This document shows, one piece after another, positions 44,432 through 62,449 of a stretch of DNA of 64,000 nt (its first letter is position 1; every line of letters starts with the position of its first letter). Location: the sequence record OQ921725.1; one strand, 5' to 3'. Under the pieces are notes generated by a model, which saw only the letters and a program-made list of their open reading frames with translations, was not told the DNA's origin and did no database searches. The position numbers were made by a program, and so were the translations under genes.

Positions 44432-44491
44432 GTCTCTCCCTTCCGGGGGGCGACCGGTCTCCCGGCCGCCCCGAGCGGCGCCGTCGGCCCG

Positions 44492-44617
44492 CTACTTCTT
44501 GTCGGCGTCCATCTTCTGCGCGTTCTCCGGGGTGACCGCGATGGCCTCCGGCGGCGGCTGGTCGGCCGGGACCGGAACGTTGATCATGTCCGGCACCTCG
44601 GGCTTCTCCTGCGTCAT
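44492..44617 (-). CDS. 41-aa Pro-rich peptide (not in ORF track)
   Basis: GGAAGAGGGAGAAG RBS; MTQEKPEVPDMINVPVPADQPPP... Confidence 0.6.
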   Translation of the reverse strand: MTQEKPEVPDMINVPVPADQPPPEAIAVTPENAQKMDADKK

Positions 44618-44678
44618 GCTCTTCTCCCTCTTCCGAGTGCAGTTCTCTGTCATCGGGATCGTGCTGTCGCTCGGCAGG

Positions 44679-44747
44679 TCAGCCGTTCAGCCTCCGCAGG
44701 ATCTCGTCGGCCTCGCGGCCCGCCTTCTCCCACTCGTCCTCGCTCAT
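44679..44747 (-). CDS. 22-aa peptide MSEDEWEKAGREADEILRRLNG (not in ORF track)
   Basis: GGAAGGGAGG RBS. Confidence 0.5.
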   Translation of the reverse strand: MSEDEWEKAGREADEILRRLNG

Positions 44748-44780
44748 CACGATCACCTCCCTTCCGCTCACACCGCCCAC

Positions 44781-44833
44781 GAGCGGCGCTCTCGGGCCCC
44801 CGGCCGAAGCCGGTTGCCCTGGGGCGCATCCCG
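44781..44833 (-). repeat. family-2 intergenic hairpin (variant)
   Basis: GAGCGGCGCTCTCGGG..hairpin..CCCTGGGGCGCATCCCG. Confidence 0.65.
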
Positions 44834-45181
44834 TCAGGCCGGAGCGGAACCGCTGCGGATCAGGCTGGACACGAAGTCCAGCAGCTCGGCCGCGTCGGTC
44901 GGCAGCTCACCGCCCGGGGCCAGCTTCTTCAGCAGCTCGACCGCCAGGTGCTCGGCCTGGTCCCGGCGCAGGGCGGTCACCGGGGCCGTGGTCCCGTAGT
45001 AGCCGGGGTACGGGAACGCGAAGTCCCCACTCCGGCACAGGCCGCCGATGATGATGTCGAAGCTGTGTCCCTGCATGCTCCGCTCGTTGCGCTGCCGGAC
45101 GTGCCGCTCCGCCGCGTTCAGGTACTCCTCCGGCGTGGCCACCCACGCACGTCCCTCTTTCAGGCCCTCACTCGTCAGCAT
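44834..45181 (-). CDS. hypothetical protein
   Basis: GGAGAGGGAGAAG RBS before ATG 45181. Confidence 0.7.
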   Translation of the reverse strand: MLTSEGLKEGRAWVATPEEYLNAAERHVRQRNERSMQGHSFDIIIGGLCRSGDFAFPYPGYYGTTAPVTALRRDQAEHLAVELLKKLAPGGELPTDAAELLDFVSSLIRSGSAPA

Positions 45182-45207
45182 CTTCTCCCTCTCCGTCCCA
45201 CTCGATC

Positions 45208-45260
45208 GAGCGGCACTCCCGGGTGACCGGCCGGAGCCGGTCACCCTAGGGCGCATCCCG
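45208..45260 (-). repeat. family-2 intergenic hairpin
   Basis: GAGCGGCACTCCC-GGGTGACCGGC-CGGA-GCCGGTCACCC-TAGGGCGCATCCCG. Confidence 0.75.
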
Positions 45261-45261
45261 T

Positions 45262-45585
45262 TCAGAGGTTCGCACCGCACAGGTGGCACGCCTTGCCGTC
45301 ACCGTGCGCACCCCGGCCGTGGCCGATCCCGAACCGGCTGACCGTCTTCTTCAGCCGTTCCTCCTTCACGCCGACCAGCGGGTTGTTCCCGACGCTGTAC
45401 AGCGTGTACGCCACCAGGGCCGGGCCGCCGTCCTCGATCACGGCGTCGTACCCCCGCACGTAGCCGCTCAGGAACGGCAGGCGCAGGGCCGACGGAGATC
45501 CGGGGTCGATGTCGATCGTGACGTGGTCGCCGTCCTGGTAGGCCAGCTCCGTACCGTCCGGCAGAGTCCAGTTGTTGCCGCTCAC
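45262..45585 (-). CDS. hypothetical protein
   Basis: GGAGGAGG RBS; C-terminal CHLC. Confidence 0.7.
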   Translation of the reverse strand: MSGNNWTLPDGTELAYQDGDHVTIDIDPGSPSALRLPFLSGYVRGYDAVIEDGGPALVAYTLYSVGNNPLVGVKEERLKKTVSRFGIGHGRGAHGDGKACHLCGANL

Positions 45586-45890
45586 AGGGGGTCCTCCTCC
45601 ACCGAAAGGCTGGTACCGAAGCTGATCGTGCACTCGTACGTGCCGGGGTCGCTCCAGTTCCCGGACTGCTCGAACTGGAGCACCAGGCCCGGCGCGTTCA
45701 CCTCCTGACACAGGGCCTTCGCGTCGGCCATCGCCAGGGCACGGGCGCGAACGGTCACGTACGTCCCCTCGTTCGGGCCGGTCACCTTGATGTCGAAGCC
45801 GAACCAGTACGGTCCGACGTGACCCGGCGGCCTGCCCCGCAGGACCCGGGTCACCGTGAGCGGGGCGATCTCCCGCGTTTCCCGCTTCAC
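45582..45890 (-). CDS. hypothetical protein
   Basis: GTG 45890 coupled. Confidence 0.65.
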   Translation of the reverse strand: MKRETREIAPLTVTRVLRGRPPGHVGPYWFGFDIKVTGPNEGTYVTVRARALAMADAKALCQEVNAPGLVLQFEQSGNWSDPGTYECTISFGTSLSVEEDPL

Positions 45891-46477
45891 GCCTTGGCCT
45901 CCTCGGCGTACGGCTCGAACGCCTCGCGGGCCATCTCCTCGGCCGACTCCCGGCCGATGTAGCCCCAGCACGAGTCGACGTGCTCCCACTCGCGGGTCTC
46001 GTCGTCCAGCTCCGGGTCGTCGCGGTCCTCGGCATCCCGGGGGATGCGGGTCACGTCCTTCTCGACGATGTGCCCGTACACCTCACCCTCGGCCCACTGC
46101 TGGTACTCGTTCTGCTCCACCTCGATGAGCTGGGCGGCCGACAGTGCCGTCTCGGCCAGCTTGTCGGGCATCACGTACCACAGCGACCAGGCGCCGTTGT
46201 GCGGCCGGTGCTCGACGACGGTGGCACCGTGGAAGATCCGGGCCCACCGGGTGAAGACCGGGACCGCGTCCACGTACCGGTCCTCGATCCGCTCCCAGCC
46301 CTCGGCCAGCGGGCCGCCGTCCTTGTCGACGTCGATGTACCGCTGACCCTTCGGCGTGATCACGTTCGTCAGGTTGCAGTCCTGCTCGGTACGCGGGTTG
46401 CAGTCCTGCGAGTCCTGCTGAACAACCAGGCGCACCCGGTACCGGCCCGCCGTCTCCAGCACGTCCATCTCGGTCAT
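45887..46477 (-). CDS. conserved acidic hypothetical protein
   Basis: Y..W..GEVYG.I.E......DSCWGY.G motif recurrent in mobile elements. Confidence 0.75.
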   Translation of the reverse strand: MTEMDVLETAGRYRVRLVVQQDSQDCNPRTEQDCNLTNVITPKGQRYIDVDKDGGPLAEGWERIEDRYVDAVPVFTRWARIFHGATVVEHRPHNGAWSLWYVMPDKLAETALSAAQLIEVEQNEYQQWAEGEVYGHIVEKDVTRIPRDAEDRDDPELDDETREWEHVDSCWGYIGRESAEEMAREAFEPYAEEAKA

Positions 46478-46512
46478 CCCGTTCTCCTTCTCCGTTCCGG
46501 CATCGCCCGATC

Positions 46513-46564
46513 AGCGACACTCCCGGGTTCCCGGCGCTCGGCCGGGAACCCTAGGGCGTCTCCG
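46513..46564 (-). repeat. family-2 intergenic hairpin
   Basis: AGCGACACTCCC-GGGTTCCCGG..CCGGGAACCC-TAGGGCGTCTCCG. Confidence 0.75.
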
Positions 46565-46565
46565 C

Positions 46566-47123
46566 TCAGTTGAAGGGCGTCAGCTCCAGTCGCCCGTTCT
46601 CCACGACCAGGGGGCGCATCGGCTCCCGGTCGGCCTCGGGGTTGTGCCCCCGGTCCTCGCACTCGCAGCCCTCGCCGTGCGCGAGGAAGTCGCCGCACCC
46701 GTAGCACCAGATGCAGGACGACGGGTCGTCCAGCGGCTTGACTGTGATCCGGACCGGCTCACCCTCGACCTCGACCACGAACCGGTCCCCGGCGAACACC
46801 TCGTCCCGGAGGATGCCGAGACCGAGGTTCAGGATGCGCTCCCGGCACTCGTCGAACCCGCAGCACTCGTACAGCGTGTGCGTGGAGCCGTTCGAGTAGA
46901 TCTCGATCTGCACCTCTTCGCCGTTCTCGGTCTGCCGGGTCAGCTTCACGCCGTCCCGCCCGACCGGCACGGCGTCGTGCGGGTGCCGTCCCCGGCTCCC
47001 GTCCGGGTGCACGTGGACGACCTCGCCGCCCATGTCGTGCTCGACCGTGGCCAGTTCACCGTCCCCGATCTCGACCCGGTCACCCCGGTCGAACATCTGG
47101 ATTCCGCGCAGCACCTGAGCCAT
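46566..47123 (-). CDS. hypothetical protein with SH3-like start and Cys motifs
   Basis: FDRGDRVEI....ATV; CC..C; CIWC..C...H..C.C. Confidence 0.75.
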   Translation of the reverse strand: MAQVLRGIQMFDRGDRVEIGDGELATVEHDMGGEVVHVHPDGSRGRHPHDAVPVGRDGVKLTRQTENGEEVQIEIYSNGSTHTLYECCGFDECRERILNLGLGILRDEVFAGDRFVVEVEGEPVRITVKPLDDPSSCIWCYGCGDFLAHGEGCECEDRGHNPEADREPMRPLVVENGRLELTPFN

Positions 47124-47124
47124 G

Positions 47125-47577
47125 TCACTTCTCCTCTTCCGTCACGTCCCACGTGAGTAGGAACGTTGCGAACCGGGGGTTATCCGGTCCCTCGTACCGA
47201 GCGTTCTCCTTGTTCGCCCATCCGGTGCGCTCCACGGCGGCCGGTGCGTCCCGGAAGGACCACACCCCGTCGTACTCGCTCCCGCCCACGTCGTTGACCG
47301 TGGGCTTGGTCCAGATGGTGTACTCCGTGGCCGAACTGCACACGAAGGCGTAGGCCCCGGCGTCCGGGGCCCCGGTGCTCTCGTCGGCGGGGCGGATCTG
47401 CCGGGTGACCCGGTACAGCGTGTCCCCGGCGCGCTTGTCGCCCGCCACGGCCGCCTCCCGGCTCTCGTACACGAACGGGCCGATCATGTCGCCGTCCCGC
47501 CCCTGTGACAGGTGGACCAGACCCCAGGCCATCCCGGGGTTCGGGGCCCACGTGTACCGGATCAGTTCCCCTTGCAT
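47125..47577 (-). CDS. hypothetical protein
   Basis: ORF, RBS. Confidence 0.7.
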   Translation of the reverse strand: MQGELIRYTWAPNPGMAWGLVHLSQGRDGDMIGPFVYESREAAVAGDKRAGDTLYRVTRQIRPADESTGAPDAGAYAFVCSSATEYTIWTKPTVNDVGGSEYDGVWSFRDAPAAVERTGWANKENARYEGPDNPRFATFLLTWDVTEEEK

Positions 47578-47590
47578 CCCGCCGCTCCCG

Positions 47591-47941
47591 TCAGTAGCTG
47601 TAGCCCTCGATGGTGGCCCGCTCGTACGCGCCGCCGTCCGACCTGGTCCACGAGGACAGCTCGTCGGCGACGTACTCCGAGGCGTCGTTGAAGTTCTTCG
47701 GGAACCCCTCGCCGTCCAGGTCGCCGTTCGTGCTGATCACCGCGACGCTGCCGTTGTTGCCGCTCTCGTCGGTGAAGTCCCGGCCCTTCTCGGCCGCCGC
47801 CTTGATCTCGTCGGCGTGCTCGTCCCAGAAGTCGCGCCGGATGACCTCGATGTACTCCGTGTCGACGGTCCACACGGCCGCCCACGACTCCGTCAGGGCA
47901 ACGCCGATCTCGTTCTCACCGTCGGTGACGTACGTCCCCAT
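47591..47941 (-). CDS. highly acidic small protein
   Basis: About 26 D/E versus 8 K/R in 116 aa; GGAGAGGGAGAAG RBS. Confidence 0.75.
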   Translation of the reverse strand: MGTYVTDGENEIGVALTESWAAVWTVDTEYIEVIRRDFWDEHADEIKAAAEKGRDFTDESGNNGSVAVISTNGDLDGEGFPKNFNDASEYVADELSSWTRSDGGAYERATIEGYSY

Positions 47942-47987
47942 GCTCTTCTCCCTCTCCGATTCAACTCACCGTCCGACACGGCACGTC

Positions 47988-48043
47988 AGCGGCCGATCCC
48001 GGAGGACCGGCCGCTCCCGAACCCGTCGGCCTAGGCCAGACTA
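47988..48043 (-). promoter_or_regulatory. -10 TAGTCT plus operator plus family-1-like hairpin
   Basis: CGGCCTAGGCCA 48027-48038 abuts AGACTA; hairpin ends in CTCCCGAAC. Confidence 0.7.
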
Positions 48044-48074
48044 GCGGCACCGTGCACGGGCCGCCACCCGGACA

Positions 48075-48347
48075 TCAGTTCCGTCCGGACTCGTACCACC
48101 CGAGCACCGTACGACTGCCGTCGTCCTGCTCGGTCTGACTCCACACGATCGACACGGCGCCGATCTCCCGGCCGCTCGAACCGTCGGGGAGCTGCGCCCG
48201 CAGCGGACCGCCGCGCACGGTCATCCCGGCGCTCACGCACGGGGCCAGCTCCGAGGCGATGCGGATCTGCGTGATCGGCTCCGCCCGCACCTCCCACTCC
48301 TCGTTCAGCTTGTCGTACGACGTCGCCGGGTATCGCCCTGTGGTCAT
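48075..48347 (-). CDS. hypothetical protein
   Basis: ATG 48347 coupled. Confidence 0.65.
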   Translation of the reverse strand: MTTGRYPATSYDKLNEEWEVRAEPITQIRIASELAPCVSAGMTVRGGPLRAQLPDGSSGREIGAVSIVWSQTEQDDGSRTVLGWYESGRN

Positions 48348-48673
48348 CGGCCCCTCTTCTCGTTCAGCCATGCGGCGGGCGGCTGGAAGGTGTACGTGCG
48401 GCTGACGTACCGCACGCCCGCCGTGGTGCGGCTCGTCGTCCCGGTCGGCACGGTGTACCGCCGGGCGGTGAGCCCGTCGATCTCCATGCCGTCCCAGTTC
48501 AGGCGCATGGTCGGGAAGCTGCGCCCCTGACTGGACCACGGGCGCTTCGGCCGCAGGACCAGGCCGTCGGCGTCGATCTTCTCGATCTTGACGATGTCCC
48601 GGCTCTCCGAAGAGTGCATGTGGTCGGTGATGACCACGTTCCAGTCCTCGGCGACGTCCTCGGGCAGGTTCAC
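48344..48673 (-). CDS. hypothetical protein
   Basis: GTG 48673 coupled. Confidence 0.65.
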   Translation of the reverse strand: MNLPEDVAEDWNVVITDHMHSSESRDIVKIEKIDADGLVLRPKRPWSSQGRSFPTMRLNWDGMEIDGLTARRYTVPTGTTSRTTAGVRYVSRTYTFQPPAAWLNEKRGR

Positions 48674-49227
48674 GCCTTGTCTCCCTTCAGCACGTCGCGC
48701 TCGGCGACGTGGGCGTACGTGATGGCCGGGGGCTTGGCGTTGAAGTGGCGGAACAGGTGGTCGTTCGACCGGGCGATGTACGCGTTCAGCGCCCGCTGCT
48801 CGTCGAAGGTGTACGTCCCGTTGCCCACCTCGCCGTACGGGTCGATGGTGTAGACCACGTACTCCCGCTTGTGGTCGGTCCACGCCAGGGCCGTGCCGAT
48901 GCGGTGCTCCCCGCTGCCCCCACCGTGGGCGTACTGCACGGCCAGCACGATGGAGCCGACGCCGACGATGTCGCCGCACTTGACCGTGCGGTATCCGCGC
49001 TGCGAGTCGAGCACGGCGATCAGCTCGTCCCGCTCTTCGTCGTTCAGCACCACGTGCTCGGTCTGCGTCCACGACGGGTGGCCCTCGTCGGGCACGGTCG
49101 CCTTGCCGATACGCAGCACGGCGTTCCCGGTGTTCGACTGCTCCACCGAACCGATCACGCTCGGGTTCGGCGCGTACTCCGACGGCCCCAGGGCCAGCCC
49201 CAGGATCCTCTTCAGCTTCTTGATCAC
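48670..49227 (-). CDS. hypothetical protein
   Basis: GGAAGGGA RBS before GTG 49227. Confidence 0.7.
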   Translation of the reverse strand: MIKKLKRILGLALGPSEYAPNPSVIGSVEQSNTGNAVLRIGKATVPDEGHPSWTQTEHVVLNDEERDELIAVLDSQRGYRTVKCGDIVGVGSIVLAVQYAHGGGSGEHRIGTALAWTDHKREYVVYTIDPYGEVGNGTYTFDEQRALNAYIARSNDHLFRHFNAKPPAITYAHVAERDVLKGDKA

Positions 49228-49314
49228 GTCTTCGTCCCTTCCGTCCGTCACGTCCCACCGTGGGACACAGGCGCGCACGAGCCCCCTCCCGTGCGCCCCT
49301 GAATCACGCGGTGA

Positions 49315-49554
49315 TCAGCCCTCCGGGATCTCGATCCCGTGCTCCGTCAGCAGCGCCTCAAGGGTGGCGATCCGCGTGCGCGCGTTGCGCTCCCGGCGCC
49401 CGGCGTTGTCCCGGGCGTACGACTCGGCCACCAGCACGGCCACCTCGGGGTCGCAGTCCTCCAGGTCACCGGCCGTCAGGCCGACCTCCCGCTCGTACCC
49501 CGGGTTCTCCTCCCGGTACTTCATGTCCATCATGTCGTCGTAGCTGCCGTGCAC
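49315..49554 (-). CDS. hypothetical acidic protein
   Basis: GGGAGG RBS; GTG 49554. Confidence 0.65.
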   Translation of the reverse strand: MHGSYDDMMDMKYREENPGYEREVGLTAGDLEDCDPEVAVLVAESYARDNAGRRERNARTRIATLEALLTEHGIEIPEG

Positions 49555-49555
49555 G

Positions 49556-49915
49556 TCACGCCTCCCATTCCGAACGGTCCAGCTCCCGCAGCACCCGGAG
49601 CGGATGCGCGCTCTTGTACTCGGTCCCGGAGTAGCCCATCCGGAAGTCGCCCGTCGGCTCGACCTCGAACACCCGGCCGCCCGTCTGCCGGGCGTACTGC
49701 GCCGCGCCGTCCAGGTCCGTGGTGAAGTGGATGAACTGGGACCGCTCACCCTCGTCGCCCCACGGATTCGTCGGCATCCCGGCCCGCAGGTCGCCGCCCC
49801 GGTACCGTCGTCCGCCGCCGTGGTAGAGCGGTCCCGTCACCGTGTACTCCCGGTCGACGTACCCGCCGTTCTCCCCGTACGCCTGGCCCATCCACGTGTA
49901 CGTCTTCGGCGCCAT
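49556..49915 (-). CDS. Arr-like ADP-ribosyltransferase (rifampin ART family fold)
   Basis: LYHG....GDL.AG...N.....FIHFTT.LDGAAQYA....GRVFEVEPTG.F.....YKS.HPLRV..E aligns by eye with the Arr signature. Confidence 0.75.
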   Translation of the reverse strand: MAPKTYTWMGQAYGENGGYVDREYTVTGPLYHGGGRRYRGGDLRAGMPTNPWGDEGERSQFIHFTTDLDGAAQYARQTGGRVFEVEPTGDFRMGYSGTEYKSAHPLRVLRELDRSEWEA

Positions 49916-50172
49916 CACGCACGGCCCGTGTTGAGCACGTCGATCAGGCGCTCGGGGCTGAACTCGCCCTCCCCGTTCTCCGTGAGCCGGTCGAACGCAG
50001 CGGTGATCAGTTCCGGGTCCCGGCCCACCTTGTCGTGATCGATGACCTGGTCGGCGATCCACTGTGCGAGCGGGCCGTGCCGCTCTCCCGAGTCGGTCGG
50101 GCAGAACTCCCACAGTTCGGCCGCTTCCAGCGCACCATCCCACTCGTCCCTGCTGTACCGGACATTGCTCAT
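49915..50172 (-). CDS. hypothetical acidic protein
   Basis: GGAAGGGAGAA RBS; TGATG coupling to the Arr-like gene. Confidence 0.7.
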   Translation of the reverse strand: MSNVRYSRDEWDGALEAAELWEFCPTDSGERHGPLAQWIADQVIDHDKVGRDPELITAAFDRLTENGEGEFSPERLIDVLNTGRA

Positions 50173-50246
50173 CTTCCCGTTCTCCCTTCCGTGGTCCACG
50201 GTGGGGCACCCGGCCTCCCGGATGCCCGCCCGAAGCACGCGGATGG

Positions 50247-50765
50247 TCAGCGGCGGACGCACGACCCGTCGCAGTAGACCGTCTCCCCGATGCCCGCACC
50301 GGAGGTCAGCACGTCGTCCGTGTCGGCGTGACCCTCGCACGGGTTGTGATCGGCGCACCGCCTGACCAGGACGATGTTCCCGGCCGCGTCCGTGTCGACC
50401 TCGCACCCGTTGCCCTCGGCGGAGCACTCCATCCAGTCCCGCATGACGATGTACTCGCCCATGTCGACGTTGAGCACCCAGCCGTCGGGAAGCTGCTCAC
50501 CCAGGTACTCGATCGCCTTGTCGGTGATGCCACCCTGGCCCGTCATGGCCTCCAGCTTGTCCAGCTCGGCGTCCGACGCGCCGGAGTCGGACTCTCCCGA
50601 TGTGCGGTACCACTCGACGACCGCCGCGTCCTCGGCGTCCAGCTCCATCCCGTGGTGCACAGCGGTGTCGACGATGCGGTACGAGTTCGTCCACCCGGCC
50701 GCCCCGTCCAGCCAGCACCCGGCCTCGACCTGGTTGCCGTTCTCCAGTGTGATGATCTCCGTCAT
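50247..50765 (-). CDS. highly acidic protein with Cys-rich C terminus
   Basis: GGAAGAGGAGAAG RBS; ends PCEGH....IGETVYCDGSC. Confidence 0.75.
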   Translation of the reverse strand: MTEIITLENGNQVEAGCWLDGAAGWTNSYRIVDTAVHHGMELDAEDAAVVEWYRTSGESDSGASDAELDKLEAMTGQGGITDKAIEYLGEQLPDGWVLNVDMGEYIVMRDWMECSAEGNGCEVDTDAAGNIVLVRRCADHNPCEGHADTDDVLTSGAGIGETVYCDGSCVRR

Positions 50766-50806
50766 GCCCTTCTCCTCTTCCGTCGTGATCCGTCGTGTAC
50801 CGCTGG

Positions 50807-51214
50807 TCAGTTCCGCGCGTCGCCCTCGGCGGCGTTGATCAGTTCCTGAGCGCGGTCCCCGCCCCGCATCTCCCACTCGTGGTAGTCGATGCGCTCCCGG
50901 GCCGTCGCTCCGTAGCGGGAGTACGCCACCTGCACGGCCAGCAGGAACTCGCCGTCGTCCCCTTCGGGCTCGATGCCCATCAGGTGCAGGTACCGCATCG
51001 CGGCGGCCGTGTAGAACGCGCACGCCTGCCGGGCTCCCTGCGGTCCGTACCACACCCGGTCGTCCCGGGCGTCGGCGTACGACGTCCCGTGCTCCGGGTG
51101 CGAGCCGACCGGCCCCAGCTTGAACATGCCGCCCGTGATCTTCTCGACCCGGGCCGCGACCTCTTCGACGAACGCCCCCGTGAACTTCATTCGCGCAGCT
51201 TCCACCGTTTCCAT
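50807..51214 (-). CDS. hypothetical protein
   Basis: ORF; start uncertain (51205-51232). Confidence 0.7.
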   Translation of the reverse strand: METVEAARMKFTGAFVEEVAARVEKITGGMFKLGPVGSHPEHGTSYADARDDRVWYGPQGARQACAFYTAAAMRYLHLMGIEPEGDDGEFLLAVQVAYSRYGATARERIDYHEWEMRGGDRAQELINAAEGDARN

Positions 51215-51255
51215 CCTTTCCGTCCGGTTCATGACCATTCGACCGATCAGGAACA

Positions 51256-51305
51256 CACTGGAAGACTCGGAACCGGGCCCGAACCCGGCCCCGAATCCTC
51301 CCGAA
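51256..51305 (-). repeat. family-1 intergenic hairpin
   Basis: CACTGGAA...CTCCCGAA. Confidence 0.7.
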
Positions 51306-51314
51306 TGCCTCAGA

Positions 51315-51425
51315 TCACCCGGCCTTGCCGTCTCTGATCTTGCGTAGTCCCGCCCACAGGTACCGCAGGCCCATGCAGGCCAGCCCGCACCCGAAGTACA
51401 GGACGAACACGAGACCGAAGATCAT
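51315..51425 (-). CDS. 36-aa membrane peptide
   Basis: MIFGLVFVLYFGCGLACMGLRYLW; ATGA coupling. Confidence 0.6.
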   Translation of the reverse strand: MIFGLVFVLYFGCGLACMGLRYLWAGLRKIRDGKAG

Positions 51426-51688
51426 GCACCCGCCACCGTGAAGACGTACGTCTCCGGGGTGTCCCGGCTCCACAGCAGCCGCGCGCCGTCCGGCAGCAGC
51501 TTCCCGGCGACGATCTCCGCCGCCTCCCGGCCCTCCGTGAACCGGTCGCCGTCCTTGATCGGGGACGGAAGCCAGATGTGCGCTCCCGTCTGCCTGTCCG
51601 TGGCACCGAGGCCCATCGTCGGCGACCCGTTCGCCGTGTGCTGCTTGCGCCGTACGACGATCTCCCGGGGCCCGTTTCCGCTGCTCAT
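51422..51688 (-). CDS. hypothetical protein
   Basis: AAGGGAGAGG RBS before ATG 51688. Confidence 0.7.
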   Translation of the reverse strand: MSSGNGPREIVVRRKQHTANGSPTMGLGATDRQTGAHIWLPSPIKDGDRFTEGREAAEIVAGKLLPDGARLLWSRDTPETYVFTVAGA

Positions 51689-51714
51689 GCGTCCCTCTCC
51701 CTTGCCTGATCCGA

Positions 51715-52344
51715 TCACGAACAACCACACCGCGCGTACGCGGATACCGCCTTGCCGCACCCCGGGCACTCCTCCCATCCGTCCCGGGTCGGCCGTTGCA
51801 TCTCCATCACCAGGTCAGCGCCCGAATCCGGACACCCGCACCCGGCCGTGGGGTGCTTGACCTGAAAGCAGCTCCCGCATACCGGCCGGGGCGCCACCAC
51901 CAGAGGCGTACGAACCGCCGTGGTCCGGCTCCGTGGCGCCGGAGCCGGAACCGTACCGGACGGCAGGATGCGCAAGCCGTCCTTGACCAGCCGGACCACT
52001 TCGCCGTCGGCCGCCTCCCACGGGAGCCGGACCACGACCCCGCGCTTGCCTCCCGGGTTGACCAGCCACTCCTCATGAGGCGTGTCCAGTGGCCGGGGAA
52101 CCGGCTCCGTAGCCTTGCGCAGGAACACCCGCATGTAGCCGGTCTCGTCCGCGTCCGGCCACTCCCGGACCGGCCGATGCGCTCCGTACCGGGACGGCTC
52201 GTCTCCCAGGAACCAGGTCCGCCCGGCCCCAAGTTGGTTGCGTTCGAGCAGACATCGGCCCGCTTGCTCCCGTGACGGCAGACGCTCGACTTCCAGACCG
52301 GACGTCGGGGTGCGCGCGGTCGGAACGTAGATCGCGTACAGCAC
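51715..52344 (-). CDS. hypothetical protein with C-terminal zinc ribbons
   Basis: CGSC...H...GC.C and CPGC...RC.C. Confidence 0.7.
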   Translation of the reverse strand: MLYAIYVPTARTPTSGLEVERLPSREQAGRCLLERNQLGAGRTWFLGDEPSRYGAHRPVREWPDADETGYMRVFLRKATEPVPRPLDTPHEEWLVNPGGKRGVVVRLPWEAADGEVVRLVKDGLRILPSGTVPAPAPRSRTTAVRTPLVVAPRPVCGSCFQVKHPTAGCGCPDSGADLVMEMQRPTRDGWEECPGCGKAVSAYARCGCS

Positions 52345-52350
52345 TCCCGG

Positions 52351-52842
52351 TCAGCCCTCCTGCGGCTCACGGTGGACCAGGGCCCACCCGTACGCCTGAG
52401 ACTCGGGGTCGTAGTCGGCGTGTTCGCACCGCTCGTGCTCGTTCCACTCCGAGCACGGCATGCCGTCGTCCCCGGCGCCGCACGTGGGCGGGTGCATCTC
52501 GACCGAGACGATCGCCCACAGTCCGGGCGTCTCCCGCATGTGCTCTTCCAGGTCGCTCCCGAAGTGCTGCCGGTTCGACTCGAACACGAACAGCGAACCG
52601 GGGTCACCCCACCCCGTGAGAACCGACCAGCCACCCTCGACCGATTCGATGGCCGCCCGCTCGTGCTCTTCTAGCACGTCCGGCATGTCCCAGTCGCCCG
52701 ACCAGTCGATGTCGATCGACTCCGGCGCGTACTCGGCCAGCGTGGGCGGCGGGTACGCGGCCGTCTCGAACGTCCCGTCGGCCTTGACCAGCACGGGGAG
52801 CGCACTCGGGCCGTGCAGCAATTCGTCCAGCGTCTTGCCCAT
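52351..52842 (-). CDS. highly acidic hypothetical protein
   Basis: GGAAGGGAGA RBS before ATG 52842. Confidence 0.75.
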   Translation of the reverse strand: MGKTLDELLHGPSALPVLVKADGTFETAAYPPPTLAEYAPESIDIDWSGDWDMPDVLEEHERAAIESVEGGWSVLTGWGDPGSLFVFESNRQHFGSDLEEHMRETPGLWAIVSVEMHPPTCGAGDDGMPCSEWNEHERCEHADYDPESQAYGWALVHREPQEG

Positions 52843-52928
52843 GATCAAATCTCCCTTCCGTCCGGACCGTCCGGCACCACGGACCCGCACGGAGTTGCCC
52901 CCGTGCAGGCCCGAAGTACTGCGCTCCC

Positions 52929-53387
52929 TCACATCCACACCGGTACGATCCGGTGCCCCTGGTTGGCGTCCAGGAATTCCATCCGTTCCGCCCGGCCGCT
53001 CATCCCCTCCGCGTCCGTCGGCCGGTTCAGGGTCATGCGCAGCCGGGACAACGTGGTCCCTTCCAGAACCGGCGCGTCCCACGTCCACAGGGTGACCAGC
53101 CGAACCGTCTCGGTCGCTTCCGCCTCCCGGCTCTGCGAGACCTCACAGAACGAGCCCGGGATCATGTAGTGCTTGCCGATGCACACGCGCGGCTCGTCCT
53201 CGACCGCCTTGTGCAACAGGTCTTGCATGTGACCGAGGTGATTCGACAGGCCGATGTACCCCTGCCAGTCCGGATCCGTCCCGTCGCCCGTCTCGGGGGA
53301 CAGGAACAGGTCGGCCGCGCCCGCACGTCCCGCCGTCCACAGCCACCGCTTGCCCTCCGGGAGCCGGTACAGATACGTGTGCTTCAT
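52929..53387 (-). CDS. hypothetical protein
   Basis: ATGA coupling. Confidence 0.7.
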   Translation of the reverse strand: MKHTYLYRLPEGKRWLWTAGRAGAADLFLSPETGDGTDPDWQGYIGLSNHLGHMQDLLHKAVEDEPRVCIGKHYMIPGSFCEVSQSREAEATETVRLVTLWTWDAPVLEGTTLSRLRMTLNRPTDAEGMSGRAERMEFLDANQGHRIVPVWM

Positions 53388-53692
53388 ACCGGCGTCCTCT
53401 CGTCCATGCCCGGCTCCCGTACGCTCTCCGTGACCCGCGCCAGGAACGCGGCACTCGCCGCCGGGAAGTCGCCCGTCGCCATCGTGGCCCGGATCTCCCC
53501 GTCGTCCTTGACCACCCATACGCCGTAGCGCGGGCGGCCGTTCTCTCCCGTGCGCAGGGTCAGCAGCACACCCGCGAACCCGTAGCCACCGTGGAACACC
53601 TTGAACACGTGATGCACGTCGGCCCGCGCGTCCGCGATCTCGTCACCCGGCTGGATGAACGCTCGCACCCGCTCCGTCGTCGTCGCTCGCAT
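53384..53692 (-). CDS. hypothetical protein
   Basis: GGAAGGGGAAG RBS before ATG 53692. Confidence 0.7.
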   Translation of the reverse strand: MRATTTERVRAFIQPGDEIADARADVHHVFKVFHGGYGFAGVLLTLRTGENGRPRYGVWVVKDDGEIRATMATGDFPAASAAFLARVTESVREPGMDERTPV

Positions 53693-53778
53693 CTCTTCCC
53701 CTTCCCGTGGACCGTCACCACACGGACGGATGCGGGACCGTGGCCCCGCGCCCGCCCGAACAGCGGCGCTCCCTGATC

Positions 53779-54402
53779 TCAGACCGTCGGCCGGTTCGCC
53801 GTGATCAGGTCGAACAGCGGGTGCGGCTCCCACTTCCGGTTGCCGTCGGCGTCCACGCCCGGCGAGACGGGACGCTCACCCTTGCACTCCCGCAGCGTGC
53901 GGCGCAGGGTCGCAATGTCGACGTCCGTGTACGCCCGGATCAGGGCCAGGTCGATCTCCGTTTCCAGCATGATCCGGCGCGTCGCTTCCTGGTTCCCGCT
54001 CCGCCGGGCCGACTCCGCGTGCTCGTCGTTCGTGACCGTGGACAGGGCCAGGCTGAACTCCCAGTACCGCACGGAGTCGTCCACGAGCATCGTGTCCATG
54101 TCGCCCCCGCGCTTCACCGCGCGCAGGATCCGGGACCGCTCGATGATCAGGGCCAGGAACTTCTCCCGGTCCATGCCGTCCTCCCACAGGTCCGACCACG
54201 TCGGCCGGATCCCGCGCACGTCGGCCCCGTTCGCGTAGCTGTGCGCCATGTGCGCCATGTGACGCCACATGGTCACGGCATCCTGCGACTCCTGCCCCAG
54301 GTAGCCGGGCTGTCCCGGACCGGGGCGCCCGTCGTGCTTCCGGCGCGTGTTGCTGAGCAGTTGGGCCAGCATCTCGTGGAACTCGGCAACCGTACGACCC
54401 AT
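53779..54402 (-). CDS. hypothetical protein
   Basis: GGAAGGGAGAA RBS before ATG 54402. Confidence 0.75.
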   Translation of the reverse strand: MGRTVAEFHEMLAQLLSNTRRKHDGRPGPGQPGYLGQESQDAVTMWRHMAHMAHSYANGADVRGIRPTWSDLWEDGMDREKFLALIIERSRILRAVKRGGDMDTMLVDDSVRYWEFSLALSTVTNDEHAESARRSGNQEATRRIMLETEIDLALIRAYTDVDIATLRRTLRECKGERPVSPGVDADGNRKWEPHPLFDLITANRPTV

Positions 54403-54465
54403 GATGTTCTCCCTTCCGGCCGGGCCCGTGTGGGCCCGGCGTCCGTCCATGACTTCCGTGCGTCG

Positions 54466-54747
54466 CTACGCGGCGAGACCCATCCGGTACGGGTCCGGCG
54501 ACCACTCCCGTGTCTGCCCGTCGTGGTGCTCGTACATCACGGTGACGTCGTGAAGCGTCAGCTTCCCGTTCTCCGTCGCGTACGTGGTCCGGATCTCCAG
54601 TTGGGTACCGGAGTTCAGGTTGTTGCGCAGCCTCCCCGCGATCAGGTCGGCCACCTGTTCGTCCGTGGCGTACCGCAGGGGCACGTACTCACCCGTGATG
54701 CACTCCGTGCACCCGCAGTCCCACGGGTCAACGGCGATCAACTTCAC
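54466..54747 (-). CDS. hypothetical protein with Cys motif
   Basis: DPWDCGCTEC; GTG 54747 coupled. Confidence 0.7.
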   Translation of the reverse strand: MKLIAVDPWDCGCTECITGEYVPLRYATDEQVADLIAGRLRNNLNSGTQLEIRTTYATENGKLTLHDVTVMYEHHDGQTREWSPDPYRMGLAA

Positions 54748-55016
54748 AGTCCCGCCTCCCGCCGCATGTGGTCGTACTGCTCCCCGTCGATCACGTTCCG
54801 GTCGAACAGTTCGTCGATCGCCCTCCCGGTGACCCAATCGGCGTTCGTCGGGCGGTCGCCGTCCTTGACCGTCTCCATGAACGCGTAGACCTCCCGGAAC
54901 TCCGGGGTCACGTGGTCCCGGTCCCGGGCGATCGTGCGCAGGACGTCATCCGTCAGCTCCCGCATGTGGAGCGTCCCGGCTTTCGCGCCGGGGGAGTAGT
55001 AGGCGAACTCGTCCAT
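54744..55016 (-). CDS. hypothetical acidic protein
   Basis: ATG 55016. Confidence 0.7.
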   Translation of the reverse strand: MDEFAYYSPGAKAGTLHMRELTDDVLRTIARDRDHVTPEFREVYAFMETVKDGDRPTNADWVTGRAIDELFDRNVIDGEQYDHMRREAGL

Positions 55017-55018
55017 GA

Positions 55019-55456
55019 TCAGATCCCGTTGCTCTCGCGCTTCGGGCCCATGTTGGCCAGCCCGATCATCCCTCGGCACACCCGGCACGTCACGCCCGTG
55101 AGCGCCGTCCCCGACGACCAGACCGACATGCGGTTCCCGAGGTTCCGGGACGCCGGGCACAGGCCCGCCGGAGGTTCGCCGGGCACCATGTTGAGCAGCG
55201 CGTGACCCTGCGTGTCCTTCCCGGGCACCTTGCCGTACTCCTGCGTGCGGAACGTGGCGATCCCGGTGATCAGGACCCCGTCCGCGTTCGGGAAGTGGCG
55301 CCCGCCGTCCGTGTCGTACAGGAACTGTTGCGGTTCCACCCGCCCGTCACCGCTCCCCGGCGTCCAGCCGTCCAGGTCGGCGATCACGAACCCTCCCGCC
55401 GTCTGAATCAGCGAACCCCGCGCGATGTCGTCGATCCTCTGTCGCGTCGTGTCCAT
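55019..55456 (-). CDS. hypothetical protein with C-terminal zinc finger
   Basis: H....LC....VTCRVC; GGAAGGGAGAA RBS. Confidence 0.75.
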   Translation of the reverse strand: MDTTRQRIDDIARGSLIQTAGGFVIADLDGWTPGSGDGRVEPQQFLYDTDGGRHFPNADGVLITGIATFRTQEYGKVPGKDTQGHALLNMVPGEPPAGLCPASRNLGNRMSVWSSGTALTGVTCRVCRGMIGLANMGPKRESNGI

Positions 55457-55480
55457 TCCGTTCTCCCTTCCGTCCGGTCA

Positions 55481-55527
55481 TGCACTGGAATGCCGGTCCC
55501 CCTCCGGCACTCCCGAACGCGACCGCG
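55481..55527 (-). repeat. family-1 intergenic hairpin
   Basis: TGCACTGGAATGCCGG-TCCCCT-CCGGCACTCCCGAACGCGACCGC. Confidence 0.8.
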
Positions 55528-55863
55528 TCAGATCGGGCGTTCGACACAGAGCAAGTCGACCTTGTGCAGGTAGACCGACTCTTCCGTGTCGTCGTCGTTC
55601 TTGAACGTGACCGTGATCGTCCCGGGGTCCGCGTCGCCGCCGGTCCTCTCGACCTTGACGATCTCCCGCATCTGGTCACGGCTCCCGTACGCACGCCACG
55701 TGTCCGTGGGCGGGTGCATGTACCCGGCCCGCGTCCGCGTGATCCGGGGCCGGATGTTCTCGGCGTCCATCCCGCGCAGCCCGATGATCTTCTCGAACTC
55801 CCGCGCGTGCTCACTCGCCCGCGCGAGTGCTTCCCCGGGCTTCAGGTAGTCGTACGTCGCCAT
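55528..55863 (-). CDS. hypothetical protein
   Basis: GGAAAGAGGGAAG RBS. Confidence 0.75.
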   Translation of the reverse strand: MATYDYLKPGEALARASEHAREFEKIIGLRGMDAENIRPRITRTRAGYMHPPTDTWRAYGSRDQMREIVKVERTGGDADPGTITVTFKNDDDTEESVYLHKVDLLCVERPI

Positions 55864-55890
55864 GCTCTTCCCTCTTTCCGTCGTCCGGTC

Positions 55891-55942
55891 GTGCACTGGA
55901 ACGGGCGGGGACGGATCCCCGCACGCTCCCGAACGCGACCGC
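55891..55942 (-). repeat. family-1 intergenic hairpin
   Basis: GTGCACTGGAACG..GCGGGGA..TCCCCGC..CGCTCCCGAACGCGACCGC. Confidence 0.8.
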
Positions 55943-55953
55943 GCTCCGTTGCG

Positions 55954-56331
55954 TCAGTGCCCCGGCGTCTCGGCGAACGAGATCCCGCGCACCTTCAGCG
56001 CCGCCCGGATCCGGTTCTGTGCGGCGGTCGTGGTGGCCGTGTGGCTCACGTTCGGCACCACCCACCCGAACATCGGGATGGTGTACGCGATGGGCGTGTT
56101 GTAGAAGTAGATGATCTTGTCGGCCCGCGCCACCGACTCGTCCCACTCCGAGCCCAGCCACGAACCGGTCCGGCTCCCGGTGCCCCCGTCGGGCGCGTCC
56201 TGCGGGATGACGTCGACCGCGTCCGCTCCGCGCGGGCGCCGTCCGCCACCGTTCAGCGCCTTCCCCTCCCGCAGGACCGTGATGAACGTCTGCCAGCTCG
56301 GAAGGCCCGTGTTGTAAGGGTCACTCGCCAT
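55954..56331 (-). CDS. hypothetical protein
   Basis: Y.IY.Y.TPIA......W.VP...HT.TT..AQ motif; GGAGAGGGAGAAG RBS. Confidence 0.75.
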   Translation of the reverse strand: MASDPYNTGLPSWQTFITVLREGKALNGGGRRPRGADAVDVIPQDAPDGGTGSRTGSWLGSEWDESVARADKIIYFYNTPIAYTIPMFGWVVPNVSHTATTTAAQNRIRAALKVRGISFAETPGH

Positions 56332-56358
56332 GATCTTCTCCCTCTCCGCGTTTCCGTT

Positions 56359-56420
56359 CGGCCTAGGCCGTTGCCCGATCATAGACCGGCTGGAACGCCC
56401 GGAGGACCCGGGCGCTCCCG
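56359..56420 (-). promoter_or_regulatory. family-1 hairpin, -10 TATGAT and operator CGGCCTAGGCCG
   Basis: Operator 56359-56370; GGCTGGAACGCCCGG..CCGGGCGCTCCCG 56388-56420. Confidence 0.7.
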
Positions 56421-56444
56421 TCTGCCTACATCGTGACCTGTTCG

Positions 56445-56978
56445 TTACTTCCGGGGCATGTCCGCGATGCGGGTCAGCATCTCCGATACGTCGCCGTCGG
56501 ATCCGTCCCCGACCGTCGTGCGCTCCGGGTAGTGCTGCGCCGTGTCGTCGAACACCCACCCGTGCCGGTCCGCCGCGTCCTCCCGGATCGCCGCGAACTC
56601 CGAGTGAATGAACCCGGATTCGTCCAGCTTCGACGAGACCGACACGCCGCGCCCGTTCGCGCACCACAGCTTCACGGCCGCGCCCCGTTCGCCGTTCCCG
56701 TCCACCCATGTGCGCGGGCCGTCCACGCTCACGCTGTGGCGCAGGGACATGCGGGCGCCCATGTTGATCAGCTCCCGCGCCATGTGGTCGGCCAGGGTCA
56801 TCCCGTCGGCCACGACGTCCACCTTCGACCGGTCGACGTCGTACCCCTCGACCATGAGCCACGAGCGCACGGCCGCGACCGCTTCCGCGCGTCCCGGCGC
56901 TTCGAACTCCCGCACGTGATACGCGCCGAACCCGGAGCCCTCCCGGTAGACCGTGATCTTGATTCCGTACGGCTTCAT
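56445..56978 (-). CDS. hypothetical protein
   Basis: GGATGGGAGAA RBS before MMKPYG. Confidence 0.75.
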   Translation of the reverse strand: MKPYGIKITVYREGSGFGAYHVREFEAPGRAEAVAAVRSWLMVEGYDVDRSKVDVVADGMTLADHMARELINMGARMSLRHSVSVDGPRTWVDGNGERGAAVKLWCANGRGVSVSSKLDESGFIHSEFAAIREDAADRHGWVFDDTAQHYPERTTVGDGSDGDVSEMLTRIADMPRK

Positions 56979-57015
56979 CATTCCCGTTTCTCCCATCCGT
57001 CGGTCCCGATAAGCA

Positions 57016-57052
57016 GGCTGGAACGCGCGGGCCCCCTTCCCGCGCGCTCCCG
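57016..57052 (-). repeat. family-1 intergenic hairpin
   Basis: GGCTGGAACGCGCGGG..CCCGCGCGCTCCCG. Confidence 0.75.
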
Positions 57053-57070
57053 TCCGCCGATCCGGCCGGA

Positions 57071-57475
57071 CTACTTCTTGATCTTCACCCCGAGCGCCTG
57101 GCAGTCCCACACGCCGACGGTCCCGGCGATCGAGAGCATGCGGGTGTGGTTGCGGTAGTTGTCGTACGCGACGTCGAACAGGCCGTCGATGATCCCGGCG
57201 CGGGTGTGGCCGGTGCTGGTCGCGTCCTTGCAGAACGCCTTGCGGTCGGCCTTGCTCACCGCGCCGCCGTCGATGTACCGGAACCACAGGTTGACCCCGT
57301 CCAGGACCGTCCCGGTCTTCAGGCACTTCGCGTCGTACGCCTTCTGTCCCCGGCTCCCGGTCTCGCAGATCGACTTGACGGCCGGACGCTTGACCGACGG
57401 GGCCGCTTCCGCGCTCCCGCTCAGCGAGAACAGGGCGACGAGACCGGCGAGGATTCCCGCGAATGCTGCACGCAT
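57071..57475 (-). CDS. secreted protein with three-plus Cys
   Basis: Signal peptide MRAAFAGILAGLVALFSLSGSAEA. Confidence 0.8.
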   Translation of the reverse strand: MRAAFAGILAGLVALFSLSGSAEAAPSVKRPAVKSICETGSRGQKAYDAKCLKTGTVLDGVNLWFRYIDGGAVSKADRKAFCKDATSTGHTRAGIIDGLFDVAYDNYRNHTRMLSIAGTVGVWDCQALGVKIKK

Positions 57476-57536
57476 GTTGATCTTCTCTCTTTCCGAACCA
57501 ATGGGCCCGATCCGATGTGACCGGGCCCGCAGTGCC

Positions 57537-57597
57537 GGGCGGCACTCCCGGCGCCCCGGTCCGTTCCCGGACCGGTTCGCCTAGGGCGTCTCCCCGA
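57537..57597 (-). repeat. family-2 intergenic hairpin
   Basis: GGCGGCACTCCCGG..CCGGTCCG/CGGACCGG..GCCTAGGGCGTCTCCCCG. Confidence 0.7.
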
Positions 57598-57599
57598 CG

Positions 57600-57983
57600 T
57601 CAGAGTTCGCTGATCATGTCCCCGTACCGCGCCACATCACCCGGCGCGATCCGGTGACCGTCGACCTCCCACTTGAGCAGACCGCGCGCCGCCTCATGGA
57701 ACGGCATGCGGGACAGGGAGGCGAGACGCGGGCGCGGGCGCCCGCTGTGGTCCCGGTCCGTCACGTGGCCGGGCTTGCGCACGGTGAAGGTGTAGACCCT
57801 CCCGTCGGTCATCTCCGCCACGCCCCGCGCGATGCAGTTCGGGTCACCCGGCATCATGTCGAACGTGATCTCCCGGGCCACCGTGTGGCCGGTCACGTCC
57901 TCCCCGCGCCCGTACTCGTACCCGTTCGGCCCGTACGGCGCCGCCGTGTCCCACCACACACCGCGCGTCATGGATTCCCGCAT
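57600..57983 (-). CDS. hypothetical protein
   Basis: GGAAGGGAGAA RBS. Confidence 0.75.
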   Translation of the reverse strand: MRESMTRGVWWDTAAPYGPNGYEYGRGEDVTGHTVAREITFDMMPGDPNCIARGVAEMTDGRVYTFTVRKPGHVTDRDHSGRPRPRLASLSRMPFHEAARGLLKWEVDGHRIAPGDVARYGDMISEL

Positions 57984-58015
57984 GATCCCGTTTCTCCCTT
58001 CCCGATGTTCCTGTC

Positions 58016-58437: not shown

Positions 58438-58535
58438 GATCGTTTCCTCTCTCTTCCCGTGTCTCGTCCCTCACTCCCGGACGATTCGGCCGGAACCCCG
58501 CCGGGGCGGAGTCCGACCGGACCGCACGGCCGTGA

Positions 58536-61326: not shown

Positions 61327-62449
61327 TGCCGGAATCCTTCCCGAACCTCCGTGCGGAGGGAAGAACAGACAGGGTTCACCCGTAGTGAGTTGCCCGGTTC
61401 TAGACCGTTGCCCAATCGGACGTGAGTTGTGTTGTCTGTTCGTGCTCACCGCACGGTGAGTGTGGAACATCCCGGGGGAAACGGCGCCACATCGGAGCGC
61501 GTCCCGTACTTCCGTGCGGAAACCGGCGCGTCGCAACGTGTCGCGTCCGAATCCCCCGGGGGACGGGAGCGCTAAGCGTCTCCCGTCCGTCACGGGCAAG
61601 GGTTCCGACACCCCTGGTATCCCGCCGTACCGTCGCGCATCACCCTTGGGACCCCTCCCAAAAGAGCGCGTGATTGTCTATGCCGTACCCGCATAGTGCG
61701 TTTGGCTCGAACCAGTGGTGAAACGGGTTTTGCTGCGGACTGACTATTTCGACACGCTTTCCCCACCATTCCCCCGGTTTCCCCACGTCGATTGTGGTTG
61801 ACCTCCCGGACTAGAGGGCCGTACTTGCGTGCGCCGCAACTCGCGGGAACCGGACTAACGCTTTAACACGTTTCCTGTGACATTCCCGGATTCCCTGTCC
61901 GCTTAGGTCGCGGCTGTAAGGCATTCCGGCAAGTGGTCACGTACTCCGTGCGCCGTATTCCCGACTGGCAAAAGGGTGACCCCTCCCACCGGTTCGAGTG
62001 GCCACGCTTTCCGGCGCCCCCAAGGGGACCGCGTGGCTTGCCGTTTGCGCCGCTCCCGCACTCCCGGGTTACCGGGGATCGTGTGCGAGAGGGCTCCGAA
62101 GATCTCAAAGAGCCGCATTCGAAAGCCTCCCGCGCCATTACGGCTAGCGCGTTTCGCTCCCGTCCGCCTCACCCGGGGATCGTGCCTCCCGTTTCCCCTC
62201 CCGACGTCACTACCGCAAGCGGCACGCGTCACAGAGTTCGTGTGAGCCCTCCCCGGTCACCCCTCACGTGATGTGAAGGAACACCCGGGCGGGTTGTCCG
62301 GGGATGGAACCCGGACGCTTGCACTCGCCCCGCGCCGCGTCCCGCCGGAGCGGGCGCCGCGTCGTGGCGACAGGCCAAACACCACCACACTCATGGCTGC
62401 CATTGCAAGTGTGGGGTTGCTGACGGCGTGTCAGGTGATCAAGGAACGT

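Follow-up and report, generated by a model that had tools for sequence, protein, structure and literature searches.

Four intergenic hairpin elements in the right arm of Streptomyces phage Frankenweenie: evidence for a conserved RNA fold and a tentative role in message processing

The small early genes of large lytic actinophages number in the hundreds, and the logic of their expression is a puzzle. The stretch of DNA analysed here, referred to throughout as the window, is the right 64 kb of the 200,048-bp linear genome of Streptomyces phage Frankenweenie (OQ921725.1, positions 136049-200048; a window coordinate is the record coordinate minus 136048), a lytic cluster BM siphovirus with a 1,038-base-pair (bp) terminal repeat and without integrase or repressor (PMC10652959). 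Window bases 44000-52000 match the record at 180048-188048 with 100% identity. Genes 255-366 lie on its minus strand with one exception, and nearly all of them are annotated as hypothetical. Our subject is a family of four intergenic elements, each 60-80 bases long, that sit between small hypothetical open reading frames (ORFs) among the early genes of this arm and fold as one long imperfect hairpin. We call them family 2 and, because the genes are on the minus strand, read them as reverse complements. The proteins encoded beside them could be assigned to no family, apart from one unknown-function PHROG for gene 336, and no paralogy was found among the flanking genes.

An earlier note on this DNA, made from its letters, had described four copies of the element, and four is also the number that we find in the genome. 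Our genome-wide scans covered the full 200 kb, assembled from pieces of the record and the window. The pair of flanking motifs has no fifth site in it, co-occurring only at the four copies, and a covariance model of the element returns exactly four full-length matches, all on the minus strand and scoring 59.7-77.8 bits, the next-best match being a generic GC hairpin at no more than 21.9 bits. The motif CACTCCCGG occurs eight times, on a single strand, against 2.0 expected, a count reached in 0 of 100 shuffles; CCTAGG by itself is not enriched in the window (12 occurrences against 8.0 expected, with 11 of 100 shuffles getting there). Copy 1 is the deviant member, with CCCAGG for CCUAGG and GAGAGCG for GGGAGUG (on the plus strand it reads CCCTGGGG, and CGCTCTCGG stands in place of CACTCCCGG). 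The 8-mer CCCTAGGG, which the note had made part of the element, is present in full in copies 2 and 3 but not in copy 1 or in copy 4, whose sense strand has CCCTAGGC. Copy 4 also has a longer upper stem with a 2x2 A.G loop, and a third GC hairpin (about 57503-57528) followed by AUUGGUU. The copies had further been said to bracket single genes or gene pairs, and copies 1 and 2 do enclose gene 333 alone, whereas copies 2 and 3 enclose three genes (334-336). The half-copy placed near 62059 does exist, at 62058-62070, but is merely a 13-nucleotide (nt) 3' box that the model leaves unscored.

On folding, the two conserved flanks of the element turn out to pair with each other: together they make up the lower half of a single irregular hairpin, which totals about 22 bp. 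In the sense direction a stop codon is followed, after 0-4 nt, by CGGGAG(G/A/U)CGCCC-U-A-GGG, then by a variable stem-loop, and then by CCC-GGG-A-GUGC-CG-CUCG. From the base upward the hairpin consists of a 4-bp basal stem, a 2x2 loop, a lower stem of 4+3 bp in which each strand has one bulged A, an upper helix of 11 bp and a loop of 4-5 nt; copy 4 exceeds the 22 bp. What had looked like a CCCTAGGG palindrome is a helix junction, in which CCU pairs with the GGG of the 3' arm, the A is bulged, and GGG pairs with CCC. The minimum free energies (MFE) of the four copies run from -43.5 to -69.9 kcal/mol, with z scores of -2.4 to -5.4.

Support for this fold comes from its variation among 37 distinct elements, a set that grew from 14 sequences and over which 22 pairs (4+4+3+11) were modelled. 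Pairing is kept in 92.8% of cells, compared with 34-46% when the partner is slid by 1-3 columns, and 10 of the 22 pairs change on both sides (68 cells), counts that are inflated by sequence relatedness and whose signal lies in part between paralogous copies. The covariation score is 0.317 against 0.144, 0 of 500 shuffles attain the observed values, and RNAalifold independently predicts the same helix. Most of the variation falls in the loop and in four mid-helix pairs, whereas hardly any affects the apical CCGG pairs, the lower stem or either bulged A. Column 19 is an A throughout, column 55 is an A in 90% or more of the sequences, and in distant orthologues a G.G mismatch at the same level replaces the 3' bulge.

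The fold also belongs to one strand. The sense strand out-folds the antisense in 27 of 29 elements, by a mean of 7.5 kcal/mol, and at the four copies the model gives 60-78 bits for the sense and 23-28 bits for the antisense. Three conserved G.U pairs make the structure strand-specific; the arms of the lower stem are complementary only through such pairs, and hence form no inverted repeat in DNA. The core reads CCTAGG in 30 of the 37 variants and CCCAGG in the other seven, a change that turns a U.G pair into C-G, as expected under constraint on RNA. Taken together, the covariation, the strand bias and the strictly intergenic, co-oriented position of the copies point to an RNA structure and not to a double-stranded DNA site, and this pattern in the sequences argues that evolution has preserved the folded structure as RNA.

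These features bear directly on the proposal of the earlier note that family 2 is a second class of binding site for the protein of a CCTAGG operator, perhaps acting as a roadblock. That operator, the GGCCTAGGYC palindrome (T)GGCCTAGG(C/T)C(A), is distinct from family 2: it lies within a sigma-70-like promoter or closely behind one, and one such promoter reads TTGACT, spacer, TAGAGT. In the window it occurs at 11286, 24892, 25835, 29018, 35609, 41394, 48030, 56362 and 58019, with at least 12 more sites elsewhere in the genome. The 6-mer is indeed shared, CTAG is scarce elsewhere, and all but one of the arm's 11 CCTAGG sites fall between genes (seven operator palindromes and three family 2 copies). 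The bases that flank the core break the operator palindrome, however: in place of GGCCTAGG(C/T)C at promoters, family 2 has GCCCTAGGG(T) or the tolerated CCCAGG, with no promoter adjacent. Moreover, the spacing from flank to flank varies between 22 and 28 nt, the antisense strand folds and scores far worse, and the phage is reported to be lytic, with no repressor (PMC10652959). We therefore regard a double-stranded operator or roadblock as highly improbable.

Comparative genomics places the element in all BM relatives, with orthologous copies in JustBecause (four), Satis (three), Kela (three) and several IMG/VR contigs. Further copies stand at other places in two complete metagenomic phages, G002 and G003, of 251 and 260 kb. 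In these large relatives the homologues of genes 362, 337 and 333 (30-54% amino acid identity) each still precede an element, while the gene downstream differs: gene 337 and its element are kept together at 30-53% identity, gene 362 and its element are kept together in both phages at 40-54%, and gene 361 follows a different element than it does in Frankenweenie. Since the upstream homologues keep the element as the downstream gene changes, the stable unit is an ORF plus its 3' element. The gap between genes 364 and 363 probably holds a degenerate fifth copy; a degenerate copy lies in the gap after gene 364 in the large relatives as well, and in G003 a weak element (28 bits) occupies the equivalent place after the gene 364 homologue.

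Outside these phages, an exact-pattern search of 185,579 bacterial and archaeal species (one genome each), which diverged forms could escape, found no true copies; its three matches score only 14-23 bits. A host-derived repeat was rejected on this basis, with the same limit to the exact pattern, and so was a REP element with its RAYT, the corresponding domain (PF01797) being absent. No Rfam covariance model matches at the elements up to E = 1 (44000-58500), and we found no earlier description of family 2 elements in the literature. The sequencing runs that carry this DNA are DNA runs, together with two RNA runs holding about 5% of the sampled words.

A second hairpin, hairpin 2, begins at the G that follows the 3' bulged A and is a rival to the basal stem: while it is formed, the lowest 8 bp of the long hairpin cannot be. 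Of 31 distinct tails, 24 have a hairpin of 5 bp or more that starts exactly at this G (G56), compared with 3.8 on average and 10 at most in shuffles; when the start is shifted 1-6 nt upstream only 1-3 of about 30 tails qualify. Independent compensatory changes in the tails can be seen by eye in copy 4 of Satis, copy 3 of L013 and copy 1 of L009. Given longer context, copies 2 and 4 already adopt the two-hairpin state as their MFE fold. When the first 15 nt are kept from pairing, that state trails the full hairpin by a mean of only 6.5 kcal/mol. Neither state pairs the downstream ribosome-binding site in any of the four copies, and sequestration of that site was accordingly rejected as a function.

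Table 1. Family 2 copies, their gaps and upstream genes, and related partial copies, in window coordinates.
Feature	Position	Strand	Remarks
Copy 1 (after gene 333)	44768..44838	-	Long hairpin (model match) 44777-44838; 3' bulged A at 44790, hairpin 2 from 44789 to ~44770
Copy 2 (after gene 334)	45195..45265	-	Long hairpin 45204-45265; bulged A at 45247 (5' strand) and 45217 (3' strand); hairpin 2 from 45216 to ~45195
Copy 3 (after gene 337)	46500..46570	-	Long hairpin 46508-46570; hairpin 2 from 46520 to ~46500
Copy 4 (after gene 362)	57503..57600	-	Long hairpin 57533-57600; hairpin 2 from 57545 to ~57530
Gap of copy 1, gene 333 to 332	44781-44833	-	Intergenic
Gap of copy 2, gene 334 to 333	45182-45261	-	Intergenic
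Gap of copy 3, gene 337 to 336	46478-46565	-	Intergenic
Gap of copy 4, gene 362 to 361	57476-57599	-	Intergenic
Gene 333	44834..45181	-	115 amino acids; single-gene cassette between copies 2 and 1; no known family
Gene 334	45262..45585	-	UGA stop 1 nt ahead of copy 2 basal stem
Gene 337	46566..47123	-	Stop codon abuts copy 3
Gene 362	57600..57983	-	Stop codon 4 nt ahead of copy 4 basal stem
Gap between genes 364 and 363	58438..58535	-	Short hairpin and 3' box CCGGGAGUG (58472-58480); probable degenerate copy
Right-end leader, non-coding	62051..62070	-	Two adjacent CGGGAG(Y)G boxes; no long hairpin

The 3' half of family 2, box plus hairpin 2, resembles a unit of another repeat in the same genome, family 1 (CGGGAG(Y)G, hairpin, UUCCAG), found at 55457-57070, 47942-48074 and 51206-51314. 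The earlier note's view of a composite hairpin element that shares its CGGGAG(Y)G box with family 1 is well founded in this respect. The two nevertheless differ, family 1 having a single short hairpin followed by UUCC, a terminator-like arrangement: because the GGAG of the box can pair with UUCC, the complete unit forms a hairpin that ends in a short tail containing U. Its score under the family 2 model is 13 bits or less. A third intergenic family (21552-21638, 29309-29406, 40583-40673) has a GC hairpin and then an inverted repeat, CCTGACG-N6-CGTCAG, directly ahead of the ribosome-binding site.

What, then, might family 2 do? At a probability of roughly 40%, we suspect that it serves, at the 3' end of the cistron upstream, to process and stabilise RNA in the manner of an RNase III site. 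That the RNA is cut, by which enzyme, how the products are stabilised and how ribosomes are coupled to this we infer along the following lines. The two-turn helix would be cut, at or near the bulges, by an endoribonuclease specific for double strands; host RNase III is the simplest choice, a more specific phage factor the other. After the cut, the upper hairpin would stay on the upstream message as a 3' cap against exonucleases, and the freed 3' strand, from the G after the bulged A, would refold as hairpin 2 and cap the downstream message at its 5' end. With the stop codon 0-4 nt ahead, a ribosome halting there would have to melt the basal stem, and translation of the upstream gene would thereby favour the uncut two-hairpin state. 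As a by-product, the copies act as short direct repeats at which genes get lost, gained and reordered.

Several features are in line with RNase III substrates: a two-turn interrupted helix with mid-stem bulges, the lack of a U-tail, a position within apparent operons, an upper helix of 11 bp whose middle varies freely between conserved ends, and a hairpin 2 suited to capping the new 5' end. RNase III substrates span about two helical turns; where they contain bulges and internal loops, cutting is limited and a 3' hairpin that protects the product is left behind. An 11-bp helix with proximal, middle and distal boxes suffices for the enzyme (PMC1540722). The S. coelicolor enzyme has a preference for G.C duplex and, in an intergenic hairpin, makes its cut next to an internal loop (PMC10126417). 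Frankenweenie itself has no RNase III domain.

Other observations weigh against processing of this kind. A bulge-helix-bulge motif can permit RNase III binding and yet block cutting (PMC1540722). Satis is without copy 1 and L014 without copy 3, the element having been lost or replaced by a plain hairpin, and the failure to find exact copies in host genomes leaves the sequence without a host precedent. The inflation of the covariation counts mentioned above belongs here as well. Finally, the lower stem is strict in sequence, whereas RNase III usually has little need for positive sequence identity. This strictness is not explained by plain RNase III and suggests a more specific reader.

The last point keeps alive a distinct possibility, namely that the element is a recognition hairpin for a dedicated phage RNA-binding protein or sequence-specific endoribonuclease that reads the lower stem and the two bulged A residues, after the manner of coat-protein or RegA-type operators or of a RegB- or Cas6-like cutter. 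Such a reader would fit a lower stem and bulges that are near-invariant while mid-helix pairs covary, a conservation that holds beside proteins only 40-54% identical, and the failure of the exact pattern to turn up copies in 185,579 bacterial genomes. The CGGGAG(Y)G-type box, which contains GGAG, is likewise biased to the sense strand (42 against 12, with 14 of the 42 intergenic). No candidate protein was found, however; the flanking genes lack families and are not paralogues, and an operator of this sort would sit oddly with a downstream ribosome-binding site that the hairpin leaves uncovered. On balance we consider a dedicated reader unlikely, if worth keeping in mind. A more elaborate version, which strikes us as distinctly doubtful, is a two-state RNA for punctuating cistrons with a dedicated and probably phage-encoded reader: when the upstream gene is not translated, the long hairpin would form and be cut at the bulged A residues, and the units so defined, from the start of hairpin 2 to the end of the upper hairpin, would also be the units of DNA exchange. 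If this were true, a single motif would govern how early-gene cassettes are expressed and also how they evolve as modules.

The position of a GC-rich hairpin right behind a stop codon, together with two mutually exclusive folds that could act as a switch, also recalls a terminator or attenuator, factor-independent or factor-assisted, that lacks a U-tail. Terminators without U residues reportedly exist in the early region of phiC31, and intrinsic terminators in general, including U-less ones of Streptomyces and phiC31, share with family 2 a GC-rich hairpin just past the stop codon. The differences are considerable: family 2 has no U-tract after either hairpin, its stem is interrupted and twice the usual length, its sequence is conserved, and it lies inside apparent operons. 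A strong stop would silence genes 336-326, copies 1-3 being in a run of genes with no recognisable downstream promoter, and the same arm has ordinary short hairpin-plus-UUC terminators in other gaps. A scan for U-tailed terminators found none at any copy or across 20 kb of the arm, the tails reading GUGCCGCUCG and similar. According to one report, mycobacterial RNA polymerase needs a U-tract (PMC3993855), which also counts against termination. We hold this explanation to be quite unlikely.

Other roles for the intergenic sequence were considered and rejected. A consensus scan found no sigma-70-like promoter in 44300-46800 or in 40000-59900, and the aligned tails have no conserved TANNNT or TTGACN; with these scans empty, TAGGGU not conserved as a -10 and the flank spacing variable, the promoter reading was dropped. 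A coding reading fails as well: the GUG in copy 2 is in frame with gene 333 in Frankenweenie and out of frame in JustBecause, and an apparent tblastn extension in G002 is stop-to-stop noise. Read-through of the stop codon was set aside despite a UGA-reading tRNA in the phage, the stop-to-stop frame differing among copies and one orthologue following UAG.

That tRNA, annotated over 73 nt as tRNA-Sec(tca) at record positions 70465-70537, is too short for a true selenocysteine tRNA; most genes of the phage stop at UGA, and the tRNA may be of a suppressor type that reads this codon. At 90673-92620 of the record, a gene for a Ro-like RNA-binding protein lies beside an oversized 91-nt tRNA-Pro, which may be a Y-RNA- or tRNA-like partner. 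Seven 6-bp palindromes, each expected 46-229 times, are absent from the 200-kb genome (CCGCGG, GCCGGC, AGGCCT, CAGCTG, CTCGAG, CTGCAG and GAGCTC). They are restriction sites of actinomycetes (SacII, NaeI, StuI, PvuII, XhoI, PstI and SacI types), and their absence is a textbook case of restriction-site avoidance.

Recombination between copies has left clear traces. Gene 333 is missing from Kela and from L012 (IMG/VR contig 3300049571_000380), and in each a single hybrid element is left, which joins the tail of copy 1 to a head and upper stem from copy 2. The upstream flank of Kela is 99% identical to that of JustBecause, which has gene 333, and 77% identical to that of L012, and the downstream flank of L012 is closest to Frankenweenie and L010; these identities point to two independent events of loss or gain. 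Both joints fall in a 7-8-nt block, CCGCTCG, that lies 3' of GGGAGUG and about 36-40 nt 3' of CCTAGG, well away from the central palindrome that the earlier note had proposed as the mark of a cut. Only two blocks of identity would keep the hairpin intact, so the use of the same one twice is not significant (we estimate about 16% by chance from the block lengths), and a site-specific joint was rejected. Elsewhere, single small ORFs flanked by two elements occur twice in G002, and the metagenome contigs of run X14 break at copies 1 and 2; contigs of four runs aligned to the window contain no deletion of gene 333.

One could accordingly imagine that the elements are kept mainly as portable gene-boundary repeats for the exchange of cassettes by homologous recombination, much as the promoter-early stem-loop (PeSL) modules of T4-like phages, which are repeated intergenic modules among small early ORFs (PMC4122927, PMC2839356). 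The fate of gene 333, the bracketed ORFs, the contig breaks and the altered position of gene 361 would all follow from such a function. Against it stand gene 335 (window 45571-45887), precisely absent from a related isolate (run X7) with four other letters at the joint and no flanking repeat, and the mosaic breakpoints among relatives, most of which lie away from the elements in identity profiles. Nor would a value in recombination explain the strand-specific G.U pairs, the compensatory changes or hairpin 2, and a promoter, a defining part of PeSL, was not found in the element. We think this explanation rather unlikely: recombination at the copies is real and looks like a consequence of their repetition, not a selected function.

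The imperfect hairpin behind an ORF, with a conserved base, extrahelical bases and a variable top, also resembles attC, as does the conservation of an ORF together with its 3' site while downstream genes change, and both joints lie in one block at the 3' base. A single-stranded DNA site of the attC or REP type, serving a site-specific recombinase, would account for this likeness. The attC core consensus is R''/L''...L'/R' = RYYYAAC ... GTTRRRY. Such core motifs are lacking in family 2, whose ends, CGGGAG... and ...GUGCCGCUCG, contain no GTTRRRY; its fold is favoured in the coding strand and in RNA, and its joints are explicable by micro-homology. Frankenweenie also keeps its four copies with neither a tyrosine recombinase (PF00589) nor a Y1 transposase (PF01797), a search for PF00589 having matched 14 of 14 control genomes and nothing in OQ921725.1. 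We judge an attC-like site extremely improbable. A tyrosine recombinase of about 390 amino acids is present in G002 (239710-240198) and in G003 (69150-69632). Of the earlier suggestion that the element is a recombination or processing site, processing is the part that fits best, and recombination between copies has taken place, but no tyrosine recombinase was found in Frankenweenie.

Returning to RNA processing, the closest parallels among known systems appear to be the RNase III signals in the early genes of T7 and the conserved RNase III processing sites in the early mRNA of the Bacillus phage SP82. Like family 2, the T7 signals are irregular intercistronic hairpins of about two turns, with a mid-stem bulge or loop, in phage early polycistronic RNA; their paralogous copies are alike in sequence, and the RNase III product keeps a protective 3' hairpin (PMC1540722). 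Family 2 departs from these systems in that cleavage is proposed here by inference, the lower stem is far more constrained in sequence than E. coli RNase III requires, a covarying second hairpin competes with the basal stem, and the element abuts a stop codon in a phage of a high-GC actinomycete host. With PeSL it shares copies that bracket single ORFs in a large lytic phage, and hybrid elements left by insertions and deletions among close relatives. Membership in that class fails, however, for want of a -35/-10 promoter, and family 2 further differs in having as its conserved partner the upstream ORF and not the downstream one, in its 3-6 copies per genome, in a stem of about 22 bp with sequence-conserved arms and compensatory evolution, and in residing in a Streptomyces siphovirus. 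The repeated loss or gain of gene 333 extends the idea of regulatory repeats as shuffling points from T4-like phages to actinophages. The gain from this analysis is a covariation-supported RNA motif outside Rfam, which the covariance model detects in metagenomic phages of up to 260 kb, together with a testable model of cutting and then refolding. If cleavage proves true, Streptomyces phages would have in family 2 their own equivalent of the classic signals of T7 and SP82, and synthetic Streptomyces operons a compact cistron insulator. By analogy with these systems, we suggest that it works most like the early-mRNA signals of T7 and SP82 and evolves partly like the PeSL of T4-like phages.

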